64,000 bases of DNA, taken from contig NW_002060949.1 of assembly GCF_000150275.1 (NCBI RefSeq), forward strand, positions 1,733,836 to 1,797,835. The letters are read 5' to 3'. This DNA is from Trichoplax adhaerens (lineage: Eukaryota; Animalia; Placozoa). Position 1 is the stretch's first letter, and the number at the start of each line of letters is the position of its first letter. The position numbers and the translations under genes were made by a program. The notes under the pieces are model-generated. The model was not told where the DNA came from, made no database searches, and saw only the letters and a list, made by a program, of their open reading frames with translations. Below, in pieces: positions 53,601 through 64,000 of the stretch.

Positions 53601-55835
53601 AAGCAAGATAAAGCTGTTATCGCAGTTTAATATCATCGCGACACAAAATTACTAATTATTAAGTGAAGCACTAAGATATTTACTTTTAGTTGTTTATGAA
53701 CATAGATAGCCCTTATGATAATGTTAGACAGCTATATTCAACACATGTGTTTTGATCTGATCTTAAAAAAATTATATGAAAGAACGCTGTAATTTCAAGT
53801 AAGGCTACCCTATGAAGTATTGGCATAGAGATACAATCAAGTGAAATCTATCTTAGCTTCGTGCTGTCTTTATTCAAATATTTACTCCACGGTGACTACT
53901 ATATCCTTTAACCTGCTACAGTAAACAAATAAATAGATACATGTAAAGAGTACAGTACGTAGGTTACAGTCTGCAACTTACAGATCGCGCTAAGGTGCCG
54001 ACTAATCTCAATATTAATACTAGTAATATTCGATAAAATACGCCCAACATACTTATCCTGGTAAAAAAACGATGGATGTGCAATAGTGCATTGTTTCAGT
54101 TTAATAAATAATGATCTATCGGAGATAGATGTTATTACGTTACTATACTAAAAGTTTGGCGTATTTACGAAGTATCATCAATTCGTTCTTTATCATGGAT
54201 TATTGTAGTGTCATCCATGATAATACAACAAAAATCCATTAAATTCTGTTTGTTTACGACCAGAATCTACTTTTGTAATACTAATATAACTACTAAAGTC
54301 TATGCATTGATGACTATATTATGCGATGATCGTATAATTGGCTGAATACCGGGATCATCCGGTAAAATTGTTGATATATCTTGCGGATTTCCTGCTATTC
54401 AATTCCAGAGAATTATTAAATAATTGCCGTCATTTCATCAAGTATGATCTCATTCTCGTCATGAAATCAATTTTTCTGAAATGATCGAAGAATATCCTAT
54501 TATTCATATAATATAGGAATTGCAGTCATTAACTAAACCGCTATAGCATGACACTTTCAATCTTCTACTGTAAAGAAAGACAAAAGCGGAAAAATGGCAT
54601 TGACACCGATTAATTACATTTATTCACGTATACTATCATATTTGTATGTCTAATATTATTTGTGATGATAATAACGATATTGAATACTTTCAAATAGGAT
54701 GAGCATATCCTACTTTCACGCATTATACGATCTATTTTATAACACTTACACGAGTTTCAACCATGGTCTAATTCATGTTGGTGGCGTAGCGCATACATGC
54801 CAACCCGATAGGTGAGTATAATACATGTACTCTTGATTACTGTCGTAGAGTCTGGCTCTAAACCAACATTGACGTCATAAAGTTAATGCAAAAGTGGGAA
54901 CGCCAAACCTGTTGGATTCGAGACGAAATAATAATAAAAACTTGTGACATTAATGACGTCAGCGATACAAGACGTGCGTACGCTATACGTGAGCGTGTTA
55001 AAAGTTCATCGTGCTTTATATTCCATAGCCAAGGTTGTATGAATCAAGGCTAACTCATTATAATACAGATACATTTCATGAATGAATAAATGCGATCTTA
55101 ATCCAATATGAAAGTCAGTAAAAGTACTTCGATCTTTTTCACTAATATTATTAATTTGATCCATTGTCGTTCATTTTCCTCCAGTATTTACCTTATGTAT
55201 TTTAATAAAGTAATTAGTTGATCTTTAGACTTTGCAGCTATTTTTTTTATGACTTCACTTAATGACATCATCACTATACTGATGAAACTCACTTTAAAGA
55301 GCATTTAAACTGTATTGTAGCATAGCTCACTACCTGTAAGAAAAAAATTTAAAATGAATAGATCCGAACTGGGATTAAAAAAATTGCAATTAGTTACATT
55401 GACACTGATTGTATCATTTAATTAAAATACATAGATTAAAGGACAAATAATTAATACCATTAAGCATGCAAATCTCGACGGCACATCTACAATACTAAAC
55501 AATACTAAACAATACGTGAGCGAAGGACAAGTAGTTTATTATAATGAAACGCATCAAAATATTAGTGATGCATCAATAACATTAAGCGATATGCAAGAAT
55601 TGGATACTGCAAGTTATGTGAGATCTTTGTATCGTTAAATGCATCTAAAGACTTTTATATGCCTACGTCGTATTTTGTAACTGACGTAGTACAATTGCTT
55701 AATTGTTACGGAATGAACATAAGCAGATCATCTCCGTTATTAGTTAGTATATTTCATTGGTCAACTTTACCATATTTCTACAGATTTATATCCAATATGC
55801 AAGTGCTTACTAAAAAGGTTAAGAATACAGTATAA

Positions 55836-56151
55836 TATTACATCAACTAATGCGATACATAATTGTACGATAGATCCAATTTACAGTTGCATTAGCCTAG
55901 CAAGACGAAAGTTCTGATGACATCAGAAGCCAACAATATGTCTATAAATATATCTATATAACTGTTCATGTATCTTTTTATATAAATACACATATTATAT
56001 CAACTAATACGATACTTAATTCTATGACAGATCCAATTTACAGTTGCATCAGCCTGGCAAGAACGAAAATTCTGATGATACCGGATGCTAAAAATATGTC
56101 TATGAATATATCTATAAGGTTGTTTACGTATCTATTTATATAAATACACAT
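55836..56151. repeat. Two-copy tandem duplication, ~157-bp unit
   Basis: ATCAACTAAT..AGATCCAATTTACAGTTGCAT..TTCTGATGA..AATATGTCTAT..TATATAAATACACAT occurs at ~55836-55993 and ~55994-56151. Confidence 0.9.
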
Positions 56152-57004
56152 CAAAGTGATGACTGTACTATACTGTACCGTACATAATATACATACATTG
56201 ACGGTGCGATTAATTATAGTTTACTCTACTTGTGTGTGTGATGCCATATGCTTATTCGCGTCCTGTATCTTGAAAGATTAGATCACTCCTACTATTATGA
56301 TGCTGCATTTAGAGTTTTGAAAGTCCTGTGGAATTGTACTGCAATAACAGAAAGTTCTCGATACACCGTTAGGCACACAGATTTGTAAGCTATATATAGG
56401 AAAAATACGTAGGTATAAGCATAGGCGAACGTTGCAATACTACAATGATGGAGTGGGCGGATACTTGTGCATTATTCAATAAAAAAAGGAAGAAACTGTA
56501 ATACAACTATACTGGTACAATACTCCCATTAATACACTCGTTGATCAATCAAATACACGTACTTAAAACGTTCACTATACTGTTCAGAGATAATTTTTAC
56601 TTTGCTATAATGATGTAAATCATTTCTTTACAATGCCGTGAGGTAATTAAAGTCAATAATGCACCGAGCATTTAAAAAGCAGGCCAAAAATTACTGGATC
56701 ACTCTCTTACTGGATGAAGTAATGAACTATCGAGAATTTAATGTGAAGATATCATACCTTATACAATACAATAAATAGGGTATTACGGGCCGCATTACCA
56801 TATGCAATACGTTACGAAAGTCATTTCGTAATACATGAAAGGTATCCAGCAAAGCGATTAAATTAGACAAATAAATCTTGGTACAGTATTACTTCTATAC
56901 AACAGCCTTCAACTAAAGAGGACAGAAAACGTAACAAGTCATATTCAAATTATAAGACTTTATGCCGTGAGCTATACCTCTCAAGCAAAAAAAAACACAC
57001 TAAA

Positions 57005-57184
57005 ATGTCTGCTACTGGCGATCAACAAGATGAAATACTTCAATTAGCGACTCAGTTGAAAAATATAGGCGATGAGATGAATACCAATTTCAATCGTGAG
57101 AATGATTATGATATTACACTTATTATAATATTAGCTTACGAAGCCCTATACTTGATAGCGAGAATTTTTTGTTTCTACACGTAA
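57005..57184 (+). CDS. Putative BH3-only protein (59 aa, possibly N-terminally extended): BH3 motif plus C-terminal hydrophobic anchor
   Basis: MSATGDQQDEILQLATQLKNIGDEMNTNFNRENDYDITLIIILAYEALYLIARIFCFYT*. BH3 core LATQLKNIGDEMN at 57044-57082; AAAATG start context; splice acceptor TACAACAG| at 56905; frame open from 56867. Confidence 0.7.
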   Translation: MSATGDQQDEILQLATQLKNIGDEMNTNFNRENDYDITLIIILAYEALYLIARIFCFYT

Positions 57185-59303
57185 TAAATGGTACGATTGA
57201 CATCAAGTAAATTTTTATTATTAATTTAAGGTAAATATACTGTCTCAAGCATAAATGAAATATTCCTAGCCTTTACTAATTATGCCTTTAAGGTATCTGA
57301 TGTATACTCTCCATCAATAATTATTTTTACTAGCTGTAATTTATACAGTGCATATTTCGATTTCTTCATCAGATCGATAATAATGTCAATTTTATAGTAA
57401 TAGTGTTGTAAACACTATAATTTTAAGTTTTCGTCGATTAAGATTAATCAAATACCTTTGAATCACTTGCTATAGATACAGACTCTTTTCGGGCAATCGT
57501 TTATAGAATTTTAATTTATCGATGTAAAATTTTTTAGTTTTTACAAACGATTATAGGGAAACTATAACATAGCATCGTTAGCTAAGACTGTACGACGGTT
57601 CTACTTTATATATTCGTACAATGACTTCAAATAACAGGTCTTGCTGTGTGTCACGCTTATAAAATTCTCTAATATCTTGGGTGATAATGTAATGAAGTAT
57701 TATAATATGCATTCGATATTCTTTCGTACTTAAAGAAAACACTGCTGACGTTAATTTCCCGCAAATATTGTAATATTTAGCGGAATCCTCAAAATTGAAA
57801 CATTTATCTTTTACAATATCTTGTCAAAAAATTATTTCTCTCTTTTTTAGCATGACTTATACGTGGTTAATCGTATGTATATTGTGCCAAAAGCAATATT
57901 TCATTTTTCTCGTAAGGTTACGCGGTACGGTATAAAGTTGCTGAACCTCTGTTAAATGAGCACATTATCGTAAACCGTCAGTAAAGCGACGGGAGTTTGC
58001 ACTAGTTTGTATAAATTCTGCATCCTCCATAAATTATATCGTATAAAATAAAAAATACTTATATGGTAATCATGTAATTATTCCTTTTGGTCTAAACGTA
58101 TGTTTTATTATTGTTGAAGGATTTGATAGTATTGAATTCACAATTTTAGAGGATATGGAAAATAAATGAGGTGTGTCGCCCAGCGGCGTTGGAGGCACAT
58201 CACAATGATAATCATTCGCGCTAGTTATGTTAAAAACCATGCTTAGGCGAATTTACTAACATTGCGCACTTGGTATATTGAATTTACATTATATCACCTG
58301 CTGTAAAACTGAAATTTTAAAATTGGAGAGGTTATGATTTCACTAAAACAATGGATTATAATTATTAGTCTTGTTGTCAATGTAAACTAAGGTTATCTCG
58401 AAGAGTTAATTGCCTTATCTTCAGCAATATCATAAAGAGAGGACAATCCAGTCAGAAATACTTGGTTATAAAATTTACAACTTTTAGACGAGACAACATT
58501 TAAGTCTGTAGCGTACTGAGTCATTCATTTCTGATCAGGATAGGAGAACAGTTGTCTATTGGTACATATCAATATGCTTACAATGATTTTACTAGAGAAT
58601 CTACAAGTCTTTCCATTATATTCGTTAACATCTATTTAACTATCGTACTCTCTGACGGTAATGATTGAATGATAAATACCACGAAAAGGTATAATATGAA
58701 AGAAGAGATAATTCTATGACTCATATCTTTTGATGTTCATGACTCATATAATATCATCAATGATAAATAATCAATACTGAATGATTATATTCTTAAGAAC
58801 AATTATCATTACACACGTATAATTATTCCAGATCAATTGGGATGAGTCATTGGTCAAAGATCATTTGAAATAGTGATGACTACATCAGTATTACAGCACG
58901 GGAGCACAATAAGTAATGTGTGACTGCTAATTCAATTGATAGATACTCGTTTACCACTGAATTGTTCAGTAATAATAAGTAAAGGCTAGGTAGAATGGGA
59001 TTGAACGATTGTAAACACACTTTAAGCCAATAACGACTGGATTGATTTTTACCCATTATTTTCTGTCTATAATACTCTGTATACTGTAAAGTTCAATATC
59101 ACAAGTACATAACAGATTGCATTGGACATAGTATGCAAATAATAAAGTGTAGGCTGCATCTTTGCTGCGACTATTCGTTGTTCATTAATTATAATTAGTC
59201 AAAGCTAATACAAGCACACTGCGATAAGTTTAATGACGTTATATAATCAATCGATGAGATGCCAAAATTGAAGTGAATTGAATGACGTCATGTATCTACA
59301 CGG

Positions 59304-59665
59304 GTACAGTACAGTGATTAAAAAAAAAAACAACCTGTACTGTACTGTACAGTATAGTATACTGTACAGTACAGTACAGTACTGTAGCGTACAGTACAGC
59401 AGACATGCGTATTTCGTTTGCATGAATCATGGCGTACTGTACAGTACTACAGACATGCGTATTTCGTTTGCACGAATCTTAGCGCAAAATGATTCTTCGC
59501 GTTCGGTACAGTACAGTACTATAGAGTGCATTGTACTGTACACTACAGTATTCCACAATTCCATGGATTGTAAAACCAAATTGAATTTATAAATTTACCT
59601 ACTGTATACTACTGTTAATAAATAAATAACGGTTATTGTAATTGACTGTAGTACAGTAGTACGGT
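59304..59665. promoter_or_regulatory. TACAGTA/TACTGTA motif cloud upstream of CC2D2A, containing a 50-bp-spaced direct repeat CAGACATGCGTATTTCGTTTGCA
   Basis: Dense motif copies at 59304-59400 and 59505-59665; repeat copies start at 59400 and 59450. Confidence 0.55.
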
Positions 59666-59771
59666 AGTAATGATGCATTCCTGAAATTGAAATAATCCAT
59701 TCAACATTGATCAGAAAAGAAATACGTTTACAGGGAGAATTCAATATGGCTTCCAGGTATGCTGTATTGAT

Positions 59772-60022
59772 CTTGCTATAGCAACATAATTTGTAAGATA
59801 TCTTCATGAATGGGTCGATGATATCTTAGACCGCTCTCTACGTGCATAAACGAAATGTTAATTTACCCTAATAGCAACATCCTTATCAAGACAAATAACA
59901 ATCTTATCCATGTAATCGTACTAGTACCAAATTAAGATGGCTAATATTGTTGTTTAGAAAGAAGACAAAGTTGTTATAGAGTTTATCAACACTTAATTTT
60001 GGATATCTTGTTGCTTGGATAC
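59772..60022. promoter_or_regulatory. RFX X-box-like sites upstream of the ciliary gene CC2D2A
   Basis: CTTGCTATAGCAAC 59772-59785, ATAGCAAC half-site ~59871-59878 and GTTGCTTGGATAC 60010-60022 resemble GTTGCCATGGCAAC. Confidence 0.6.
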
Positions 60023-60216
60023 GTTACAGCATATGACATAGGTTACATAGGACATACCGAGTCTAAATTAGTATTAGAATGATTATTGCTAATCTCTAGA
60101 GATAAAATTCATTTTTAAATCGCATAATCAAGGTTATATAGTTATCCTTTTTGGGGAGTATGCTTTTAATGACTATACGTGTCTTAATTATGTTGTATTT
60201 TCTTCAAAGTGTTGAT

Positions 60217-63200
60217 ATGGTAAGCCAACTTCAGAAGAGAAGGGCTGCTCTTGAAGTGACACTACAAGTAAGCACAAATTTCAATGTCTAGATAACCTAG
60301 ACGTATGTACTATCCTGCGACATTAAGTGTTATATAGTGTATCACAACGGTGCACATTCTATCATAATGTATAGCTATATCATCCACGCTATCAATTAAT
60401 ATTATTACTACTAAATATTAGCTGATAATATTCATTAGTACTATTGAAGCTATAATACGGGTACTATATTTATCGTTAATACACTCAGATGGCACTCTTA
60501 AAACCACAGCTAAAATTAATACAGACATAGCCAACCCTTGGTCTACGGTCTTAATGATAACATCGTGACCAGACCCTTTGTCAGATTAGGCTATCGTATT
60601 TTATGTTTCATTTATTGTAAAATCTTAAAATACATGTTTCAATTTAAAATCCGCAAAAGGATTCCGGTAGTGATGCATCAAATTGGATGGAAATGTCATC
60701 AATGAATGAAAGTCAGAAAGCGAAATCTGCCAAGTTAAATGTTAGTTTAAAAAAAAGTGTCATGATGCCCTCAAATAAGTCTAGAGCAATTGTTAAATCT
60801 TAGACAAGAATCCATCATCAATATTCTCATTATTTAATGATTTAGGCTTCTAATAATATGTTAGAATCTTTAAATCAACGAAGACTCCAGCGGATACAAG
60901 ACGTAAGACATCCTGAGAGTTTTGTGTGACACGAAAATATCTCTGCTATGCGTAATCAAATCACTGTATATCGCAAAGATGACCCTAGGCTCACTAATAG
61001 TGTTTTTCACAATAGATACAAGATAGTGATCATGGAGGTGAAGCAGAAAGTGAAAATAATGAGAATAAAAACACTGGCATTGGAGGTATTTAGGCTTTAT
61101 TAAGCGTGTTTATAATAGCTAATACAGAGCCAGTCTTTTCAGTTAATGTAATTATCTTCTGACTCTATTAATATAATTTACTGATTAGGAATTATAACTG
61201 TTGGCCGTCCTAAAAGTCTAGCTGTAGAGGATAATAGCCAGCGACAAAGTGATGAAGGCGTTCTTACTACTAATTTGCGCGACAAGTTGCGTAGTAAAGT
61301 TATCGAAATGGAGGCTGTAAGTAGCAGGTCTACCTGACTTAACTATTTTAATCTATCACAATAATGTCATTTCCATAATACAAGAGCACTATTCTGCTAT
61401 TTTGATAAGAAACAGCCTACATTCAATTCAAGTTGTCAATAGTATACTTTCACATGCATGTTTACGCTGCTAATTTAGTGCTATCGAAAGTAGAGTTAGT
61501 ATGAGGTATTGTTTTGCGACTATCACCCTCCGTAAAATTTATCTCAAATGTCATTAACTTTCGGCATGATTCAGTAGAACGTAAATTATTTTAAAGTTGT
61601 ATTCTACCAAAGAAATTTATAAGTATCTTAATTTTCTCATACAAAACCATTAATTTGTATACTACCATGATTTTCATCTTACCTCAGTTTTTGATGTCTT
61701 AAAGCAACTGCAAGTTGTATACACTTATATGTAGAATACTACGCATATATGAGAATTTTAAATTCCGTCAATTTGTGAGATAGTAGCAAAGATATAATCA
61801 ATGTGTCATTACATTTATTCTACGAAAGAAATCTAATAGCTCAATTAGATTATTAAGATAACATTATACGCGTATATATTGTAAATTATAAAAAGAAAAA
61901 AGCTTTTGATTATAAATTTAAAAATTTGAGTTGTAATCTTTGAATTTTTTCCCTCATATGAATATGGGCCACCAAAAATTCACTATATGATCGAATAGGA
62001 AAATATGGAGGACGAAAGCGAAGTAAATTATGAGCTTATTTAGTCCGTCTTATTCTATCGTGACTTAAACTTTGATACATTATAACTCTAGATAGTGTTT
62101 ATTAATTATCATTTCTGACCTTTAAATTAATTTAAATTTCATTTAGCGTCCAGTTTCACGTTTGCGTGATCTTAGAGATACGGTAACAATGACTCGATTC
62201 GATGATCCTACGGTAAGATTTTAGAGCAACTATTAGCTAAAATCACTATTTACTTGCTAGCTATAATCCTACTAGACTACTAGTAATTCTTGCTTTCTTA
62301 GCCTAATTATAACTTCTTTTAATTCACAAGCTGGGGACTATCAGTCCAGTACCTCGAGATGATGATGAACAAATGGATTCAACATTAGAACGCTCTGCTC
62401 AACTATCAGCACGTTGGCGTCGTACTGGTGAACGCAAAAAAACAGCTGATGGGGTAGGTGATTCAAAGCGTTGCAAATAAAATTTCTTACTCTTGCAAAA
62501 AATTAATGTTTCATATTATCAACATTTGCTCATTTTCAGACGCCAATGCCAACATATGAAGAAAGACTGGCATTTTTTACTGGTAATTTCGACTTTGTTG
62601 ATGATGAAGACGATTTCGTTAGGAAAGAAACCCCAACTGTTACGAAACCAAAACTGACTGATATTAAAGAAGAGGACTCCCATTCTAGAAAAGACCTGGA
62701 AGAAAGAGGTACTCCAGACGATCAAGAATCAAGACCAGATGATGCTAGTCAAGAACCTGAGATAACTCAGGTATTAAAACAATTATTTTAATGATATTTA
62801 ATTCAGTCATATTATGGCTCTTACAATTGAAGTTGTGATAATAATATTAAAGGCAAGAGATGACGAAGATCAAGCTGAAAGCCAGCAACCAGCAGGAACG
62901 GAAGACGAAACTGAAGATTTATTATTAGACGACGATGGGAAATTAACGCGCCCACTTAAAGCCAGATATGTACCATTTAAAGAAAGACTAGAAAAAGAAA
63001 ATCAAATATACTATATACCCAGTGTTAATGGTGTTGATTTCAGTCAAAAAACTGAAGATACCAAAGCAGAGCCTCGTCTTTTAGAAGACGAGGGATTTTA
63101 TGTTGGTGATCAACCTGCCGTGACAACACGCAATATCAGGTTTATTGAAGAACGTATATCAAAACAAGCCAATAAGGTAAGGTAGTAAAGAAAATACATA

Positions 63201-64000
63201 TTTCACGATTATTCGGAAGCAGAGTTTTATATTATGATCGTAACAATTGTACATAATACCATTTTCAAAGTTAAATCAAAAAATTTAGCGATATTTATGA
63301 TGTATAATGCTTAAAAGTATATGTATAGTTAAGAGTTTAGCTCTAAAAGTTTTTTATTTTTGGCTCATTAGAAATATTGAACTTAATGACAATTGTAGTA
63401 AAAATAATAGATACTATTTTTACTTTAGATTGACACTAAGAAACCGTCACGATATATTAATTGGAGATGTAGTTATGTTATCAAATGAAAATATATCACA
63501 ATTTAGATTGTTATTATTAATATCAGATTTGGAAGTGATATTTTGACTGAATTATGAATCATCATTATAGGGAACGAAATGGTTTGATCAAGGTGGAAGA
63601 TTGAAATATTTAGCGGATCCGTTAAAGCAAAAAGTAACTCGTCCTGTAATAGCTCTCTTTAAAGATGATGAAGAATCTAGCTTAAAATTAGATTATGTTA
63701 AGGTAAGCAGCAGGACAATATTATAACCATTTTATGTTTTTAAGTTGTTACTTTATGCTATGATTAACGACTAATGTTTTGTATCATCAATTAAAATGTA
63801 TAATCTTAGTTTTATTCCTTTATCATTTGTCGAAATTTAATTGGAATAAATATTTCTTTAAGTAAAGATACAAAAATACGAATAAAAAGAGCGTTTTCAT
63901 AACAATTTAGCACTTATTAACACTTTTGCAGCCCATTGTGACTTCACAAGATAGCTATGTAAAATCAAACGCTAAAGAATCTCAAGATTATCAGCTAGAT
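60217..64000 (+). CDS. CC2D2A: Coiled-coil and C2 domain-containing protein 2A (MKS6, ciliary transition zone), 5' part only
   Basis: Acidic, low-complexity N-terminal exons from ~60217, then PTYEERLAFFT, YYIPS, PRLLEDEGFYVGDQPAVTTRNIRFIEERI and KWFDQGGRLKYLADPLK..RP, which parallel conserved CC2D2A blocks (PRFLEDEGLY, WF.DDGRIL.LPNPIK). Start codon tentative. Confidence 0.88.

Follow-up and report, generated by a model that had tools for sequence, protein, structure and literature searches.

Does Trichoplax adhaerens possess a dedicated BH3-only protein? No BH3-only gene was found in this placozoan in published work (PMC7527217; PMC8998228), and a model has been built on the absence, according to which BH3-only proteins arose later from Bak-like proteins (PMC7527217; PMC8998228); a "highly divergent", hidden BH3-only protein was left possible in one of the two papers. 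Our own search of the literature found no report of a placozoan BH3-only protein. The question is raised by a short open reading frame (ORF) at positions 57005-57184 of a 64-kb stretch of genomic DNA (64,000 nucleotides in all, hereafter the window), which a first-pass annotation, made from the letters alone, had read as the gene of a small BH3-only protein. Its statement that Trichoplax had been described as having no BH3-only protein matches the two papers cited above, and its supposition that the DNA came from a placozoan was right, the host being T. adhaerens, with a Bcl-2L2 that is 99% identical to UniProt A0A1B1IJN9_TRIAD.

A 59-codon ORF with a BH3 core and a putative tail anchor

Direct translation of positions 57005-57184 (+ strand) yields 59 codons followed by a TAA stop, as the first-pass annotation had described, and the ATG at 57005 is the earliest in-frame ATG, GTG or TTG downstream of an in-frame stop. 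We treat 57005..57184 (+) as a single-exon candidate coding sequence for a BH3-only microprotein of 59 aa, an assignment that draws on the translation, on an orthologue (P0003, see below), on the codon phase of mismatches and on in-frame gaps. The BH3 core, L14-N26, is encoded at 57044..57082 (+), with L14 at h1, A15 as the small residue that follows, L18 at h2, I21 at h3, then G22, D23 and E24, M25 at h4 and N26 as the cap. Residues 14-26 (LATQLKNIGDEMN) had been said to fill every BH3 position, and they do satisfy a strict BH3 regular expression, for which this is the sole match in the six frames of the window.

The core is followed by an N/D-rich linker (residues 27-36; 57083..57112, + strand), which is weakly conserved in the alignment of the ORF with its orthologue (alignment A2), and then by a hydrophobic C-terminus (residues 37-58; 57113..57178, + strand), which hydropathy, conserved residues and a predicted helix mark as a putative tail anchor. 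The mean Kyte-Doolittle hydropathy of the final 21 residues is 1.84 in H1 and 1.57 in P0003, so the hydrophobic tail noted earlier at residues 37-58 is borne out and is kept in the orthologue. The N-terminal 35 residues of the product are acidic, with a net charge of -5. A single C-terminal hydrophobic segment behind an acidic, hydrophilic N-terminus that lacks a signal is consistent with a tail-anchored protein with a predicted anchor; the charged residues E46 and R53 within the H1 tail count against this reading. AF2 predicted a continuous helix with confidence peaks of pLDDT 88 (residues 11-20) and 87 (residues 41-50), and the amphipathic BH3 helix would, on this model, span about residues 8-28. 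BH1, BH2, BH4 and the Bcl-2 fold are absent from the product, which is 59 aa long and has no match to PF00452; the earlier remark that it leaves no room for BH1 and BH2 thus stands. An AATAAA at 57183..57188 (+), read from the sequence, overlaps the stop codon and is a possible poly(A) signal of a short isoform; the RNA contigs described below continue beyond it.

Genome-wide searches covered the assembly of 105,631,681 bp in 1414 contigs. The ORF has no paralogue in the Trichoplax genome according to a whole-genome protein-versus-DNA search, in which a second weak match (L002, E 0.5) was taken as chance. The exact 59-aa products of H1 and H2 were not on record in a collection of 15 billion proteins, and we therefore regard the ORF as unannotated in H1.

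The BH3 is a degenerate short linear motif, and searches with a consensus yield many false positives (PMC9171138, a review). When a 12-residue partial core was written as a 35-nt degenerate DNA pattern, five matches were found genome-wide versus nine for the backwards control; by itself, the BH3 motif could turn up about once per genome by chance. Only one of the five, the match at 57005, also lies in an ORF that starts with ATG, has a hydrophobic residue at h1 and an N/H/D/Y cap, and ends in a hydrophobic tail. The other four were rejected, three for want of h1 or the cap or because their open frames are tiny, and one because it contains a stop codon. One of these three, at G000:C1414:12447090-12447124 (minus strand), lies in an open frame with KHGTC...SLAALGDELK that looks like an RNase T2 exon; to judge from this sequence, the core there looks like a chance occurrence and is an example of a motif false positive. 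Within the window, where the G+C content is 30-34% nearly throughout, 49 of 1945 ATG ORFs (2.5%) are at least 55 aa long, and a tail hydropathy of at least 1.5 was reached by 3 of the 90 ORFs of 45-120 aa. The combination of motif, ATG ORF and tail is rare, and the case for the ORF does not rest on rarity.

An orthologue in a second placozoan lineage

A homologue search with HMMER against 1.84 billion representative proteins returned three proteins, P0001, P0002 and P0003. The first of these is a gene model of Trichoplax sp. H2 and is treated below. P0002 (1849 aa, repetitive and coiled-coil-like) was rejected as a relative, its match (EL..LQTQAK...EM) being one of low complexity without the G-D core. 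P0003 is a 55-aa ORF (L013:923-1090) found only on the genomic Logan contigs L013 and L014. It is 49% identical to the full unspliced ORF (E 3e-4 against the 1.84 billion representatives and 7e-13 in the pairwise comparison) and shares with it the start region and the stop as well as the BH3 core (LATxLKxIGDE.N) and a hydrophobic tail. A six-frame search of the complete Trichoplax genome with P0003 gave a single match, the 57005 ORF (E 1.3e-6).

In alignment A2 the two proteins have L12, L14, A15, T16, L18, K19, I21, G22, D23, E24 and N26 in common, and 9 of the 13 positions of the BH3 core are identical, including L14, A15, L18, I21, G22, D23, E24 and N26. The h4 position differs, with M25 in H1 and A in P0003. 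The residues common to the two tails are L43, A44, Y45, A47, Y49, L50, I54, F55 and F57 (LAY.A.YL...IF.F). As judged from this alignment, the BH3 core is the most conserved block of the 59-aa protein, and a conserved hydrophobic tail lies C-terminal to it.

In run SRR30664517, whose number adjoins that of a run with P0003, a genomic contig carries a Bcl-2L2 gene whose product shares 83% identity with its Trichoplax counterpart; the end of the gene, an intron read-through, is exactly like that of the Trichoplax exon. Given this degree of identity in the neighbouring run, we conclude that the source of P0003 is whole-genome data from a placozoan that is clearly distinct from H1 and H2. Three weak collinear anchors were found downstream of the ORF between L013 and the window, which argues that the locus is orthologous. 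The ORF was the only significant similarity in a DNA comparison of the 3-kb L013 with the 64-kb window, and it was again the only match (E 1.4e-11) when all frames of L013 were compared with the window by tblastn; an antisense ORF of L013 had no counterpart in the window. On L013 itself, about 240 bp just upstream of the ATG are tandemly duplicated (433-922; 83% identical), the duplication ending at the start codon. The A2 profile found no new relatives in a collection of 5.8 billion proteins, no homologues outside placozoans were detected in this collection or among the 1.84 billion representatives, and a scan of JGI metagenomes in which 599 pattern stretches matched gave no relatives.

Resemblance to known BH3 proteins and fit to the Trichoplax Bcl-2 family

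We searched the A2 profile against 177,635 distinct PDB sequences. All nine matches (E 0.042-1.2) were BH3 peptides or BH3 proteins, namely mouse BID (2voi_B, E 0.042, and 1ddb), PXT1 (8gsv and 7wjh), BIM (1pq1_B, 5vww and 5vwv), BAX (6wh0_B) and BAK (4d2l_B), and the five alignments displayed were all in the expected BH3 register. The only weak Pfam match of the ORF was to the BID-family BH3 region (E 0.14; the BID matches together had E 0.12-0.14, below the 25-bit cut-off); the H2 model P0001 had a sub-threshold Pfam match to the unrelated SAS4 (E 0.068). Since the PDB and Pfam E-values are marginal, we take them to indicate resemblance of a motif, not homology. Homology to Noxa, Bik or Bim in particular, the proteins that the first-pass annotation likened to the ORF product, was not supported: no significant similarity was found past the motif, and the nearest sequences were BID, PXT1 and BIM peptides (E 0.04-0.5). 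On sequence grounds, homology of the 59-aa protein to Noxa, Bik, Bim or Bid cannot be demonstrated. A BH3 motif was defined here as an amphipathic helix with h1-h4 hydrophobic residues, a small residue before the invariant Asp and an L-x(4)-D core; the ORF product has a match to the strict regular expression, PDB matches exclusively to BH3 sequences, a predicted helix at pLDDT 88 and a core that is kept in P0003.

The layout of BIK/HRK-type BH3-only proteins is an acidic, disordered N-terminus followed by the BH3 and a C-terminal anchor. Like BIK, HRK and the short NOXA, the candidate is small, lacks BH1, BH2 and BH4, and has a single BH3 helix with an L-x-x-x-G-D core plus h1-h4 and a C-terminal hydrophobic anchor. 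It differs from them in that no homology is detectable beyond the 13-residue motif, in that it is placozoan-restricted and in that its function is a putative one; its 59 aa make it shorter still than BIK, for which PMC9932132 describes an ER tail anchor. The BH3 region of mouse BID (2voi_B, 1ddb) is the best profile match in both PDB and Pfam, with about 11 of 24 aligned residues identical, including IGDEM and a preceding acidic, QEEI-like stretch; however, BID is a cleavage-activated protein of 195 aa with a Bcl-2-like helical bundle, and the candidate is too short for that fold. The BH3-only proteins of Hydra (e.g. hyBH3-only-2) are likewise non-bilaterian candidates of this class, but they belong to another phylum and showed no sequence relationship to the ORF product in a phmmer search of the 1.84 billion representatives.

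The Trichoplax genome has four genes with a Bcl-2 domain (PF00452), all of them away from the ORF: trBcl-2L2 (PDB 6YLD; L004), another pro-survival member (L007), a Bak-like gene (L005) and a Bax-like gene (L006). Across residues 86-174 of Bcl-2L2, the part with BH1 and BH2, the two placozoans have only four differences. In the 6YLD structure, four pockets are occupied by I109, L113, L116 and Y120 of trBak, and its D118 is paired with R97 of trBcl-2L2 (PMC7527217); when residues are mapped onto one another, the counterparts of I109, L113, L116, Y120 and D118 in the candidate are L14, L18, I21, M25 and D23, respectively. trBcl-2L1, like trBcl-2L2, binds human BH3 peptides promiscuously and at nanomolar affinity (PMC7527217). 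trBak (trBcl-2L4) has itself been proposed as a BH3-only-like sensitiser and would occupy the same regulatory tier as the candidate, in which its contacts with the trBcl-2L2 groove have counterparts; unlike the candidate, with its 59 aa and one motif, trBak is a multi-BH protein with the Bcl-2 fold (L005). The best-supported mechanism, and one that we infer, is that the 59-aa protein is a functional BH3-only ligand of trBcl-2L1 and trBcl-2L2; on balance, we consider this probable.

The coding conservation would also be explained by a real, conserved tail-anchored microprotein whose BH3-like helix arose by convergence and which does not act on Bcl-2 grooves, such as a regulator of an organelle-membrane complex. 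BH3-like motifs occur in many proteins that have no part in apoptosis, and consensus patterns are poorly predictive (PMC9171138). The change of h4 from M to A and the statistically marginal likeness to known BH3 sequences point the same way. Convergence would, however, have to account for a most conserved block that has exactly the BH3 contact pattern, L-A-x-x-L-x-x-I-G-D-E-x-N, for PDB matches that are all groove-bound BH3 peptides, and for the established BIK/HRK-type layout. It would also have to have produced such a helix in an animal whose grooves accept BH3 peptides (PMC7527217). We regard a convergent helix as unlikely, though as an explanation to be taken seriously beside that of a groove-binding BH3-only protein.

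Transcript coverage and coding constraint

A 1-kb stretch containing the ORF is present in 17 runs from six studies, three of them RNA by record. RNA or probable-RNA runs gave an unspliced contig stretch covering 56240..57977, the contigs being strandless and giving neither the strand nor the true ends of the RNA. These contigs are collinear with the genome (56240-57970 in run X1, 56619-57977 in X2 and 56584-57925 in X8, which is RNA by record), and coverage of the surrounding 5.5 kb was patchy in all three runs, whereas it was even in the DNA-like run X3. The right ends of the RNA contigs stop at a high-copy repeat, and contig breaks coincide with a 157-bp tandem duplication (55835-56151) and with the repeat, which is 66 nt long. 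Transcription seems to extend far, over at least 1.4 kb and perhaps 2.8 kb; an RNA from the + strand would have 10-16 upstream ATGs ahead of the ORF.

Long, unspliced, strandless RNA contigs with many upstream ATGs would also fit an ORF that had arisen by chance in a long non-coding or intergenic RNA without splicing, in which case the conserved island would be a regulatory or RNA element. It fits this explanation that the ORF is unannotated in H1, that the H2 model differs from it, and that chance should yield the bare motif about once per genome. The pattern of conservation argues against it. The orthologue keeps a 55-codon ORF in an AT-rich context in which 2.5% of ATG ORFs are that long. 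In a free MAFFT alignment, nucleotide identity was 65% in the ORF and, on either side of it, 49% and 40% (Fisher p 1.3e-4), and the gaps were 6, 3 and 6 nt long within the ORF versus 1, 8, 2 and 2 nt outside, so that indels in multiples of three were seen only inside it. Mismatches in the ORF fell at codon positions 1, 2 and 3 in the ratio 19/12/28 (p 0.03-0.04), a bias towards the third position, and the Nei-Gojobori method gave a pN of 0.31, well below a pS of 0.79 that is saturated; these coding-selection statistics describe one species pair, Trichoplax and the P0003 lineage. The in-frame sequence 5' of the two ATGs is unrelated between the window and L013. Conservation begins at the ATG and stops at the stop codon.

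No Rfam family was found between 54.5 and 60 kb of the window, and no paired half-sites of a p53 response element were found near the ORF or in L013. The DNA of H1 and H2 is 99.5% identical at the locus (9 differences in 1.9 kb) and is uninformative for selection; the sole H1/H2 difference within the ORF is D34N at 57104, in the linker, and a variant at 57169 (runs X8 and X3) is synonymous (F55F). Conservation and selection in a related genome had been proposed as a check by the first-pass annotation, and the comparison with the P0003 lineage provides both, the ORF and its BH3 core being kept and pN (0.31) being lower than pS (0.79). From these sequence comparisons, we consider 57005-57184 to be very probably a genuine, conserved and unannotated coding gene, and a chance ORF within a non-coding transcript to be improbable.

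The spliced H2 gene model

The protein P0001 belongs to Trichoplax sp. H2, where its gene model is TrispH2_006491 (RDD41306.1); it is 85 aa long and is encoded at L003:6001-6393 (NOWV01000078.1), which corresponds to window positions 57005-57397. In this model residues 1-31 of the ORF, which are identical, are joined to a second exon ending at 57397 by removal of a 135-nt intron (57096..57230, + strand; donor GTGAGA, acceptor AG) that is probably not used. The 57096-57230 splice joint was seen in no RNA-library contig; on L013, a GT donor is missing from the corresponding position, and nothing there resembles the second exon of H2. We therefore take the 59-aa read-through product to be the conserved one, and TrispH2_006491 is probably the 59-aa gene modelled with a wrong splice. 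That the product is instead the spliced 85-aa protein, in which the BH3-bearing residues 1-31 would be followed by another hydrophobic C-terminus from 57231-57397, has in its favour an annotated model with a good donor and acceptor and a second exon that is hydrophobic too, but the joint is missing from the RNA contigs, the donor and second exon have no counterpart in L013 and what the orthologue matches is the read-through tail of the 59-aa ORF; we consider it very improbable.

Sequence elements flanking the ORF

The tandem duplication at 55835-56151, upstream of the ORF, is a local one of about 157 bp whose copies are 83-89% identical, and we attribute breaks in the RNA-run contigs to it. 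Downstream of the ORF, positions 57941-58007 hold the 66-nt element mentioned above, which has at least 455 candidate genomic places at 95-100% identity and is present at enormous depth in DNA-like and RNA runs; the RNA contigs break there. This element is not a tRNA, has no Rfam match and has no stable fold (z -0.02), and it may be a short interspersed repeat, or else an active element's terminal repeat. At 59284-59572 lies a block of very high copy number, rich in GTACAGTAC/GTACTGTAC, with inverted arms of 45 nt (59338-59382 and 59506-59550) and, at 59384-59483, a 50-nt tandem pair. Many alternative joints were seen in reads; the block, which lies just upstream of a CC2D2A-like gene, looks like a MITE or a satellite. 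This downstream neighbour, a CC2D2A-like ciliary gene, occupies about 59650-64000 (+) of the window, and its first exons are found in RNA contigs from 59652 onwards. In H2 the CC2D2A-like gene encodes 1675 aa with PF17661, PF15625, PF24656 and PF24652.

Discussion

We propose that 57005-57184 is an unannotated single-exon gene for a 59-aa tail-anchored protein, in which an acidic N-terminal segment with an amphipathic BH3 helix would lead, by way of a short linker rich in N and D, to a membrane anchor at the C-terminus. The tail would insert in the mitochondrial outer membrane or the ER, leaving the BH3 to face the cytosol. As a ligand of the pro-survival proteins trBcl-2L1 and trBcl-2L2, or by direct action, the protein would set trBax free or activate it, and permeabilisation of the mitochondrial outer membrane would follow. 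The product would then be a placozoan-specific BH3-only protein. Translation, membrane topology, groove binding and the pro-death role are the parts of this scheme that we infer. The broader proposition, that placozoans own a dedicated BH3-only trigger, tail-anchored and 55-59 aa long, that was missed by homology screens, is one on which we hold an evenly balanced view.

The locus illustrates that a conserved coding gene under the usual annotation cut-offs of 60-100 aa can stay unannotated in a well-studied genome. With this ORF, which is kept in two lineages, placozoans have a first credible candidate for the BH3-only trigger of apoptosis that they were thought to lack. If it does encode such a trigger, the three-tier Bcl-2 network, in which BH3-only proteins act on pro-survival proteins and these on Bax and Bak, would already have been in place in the placozoan lineage, and the view that mitochondrial outer-membrane permeabilisation in early animals was controlled by multi-BH proteins alone, with trBak as a stand-in sensitiser, would need revision.
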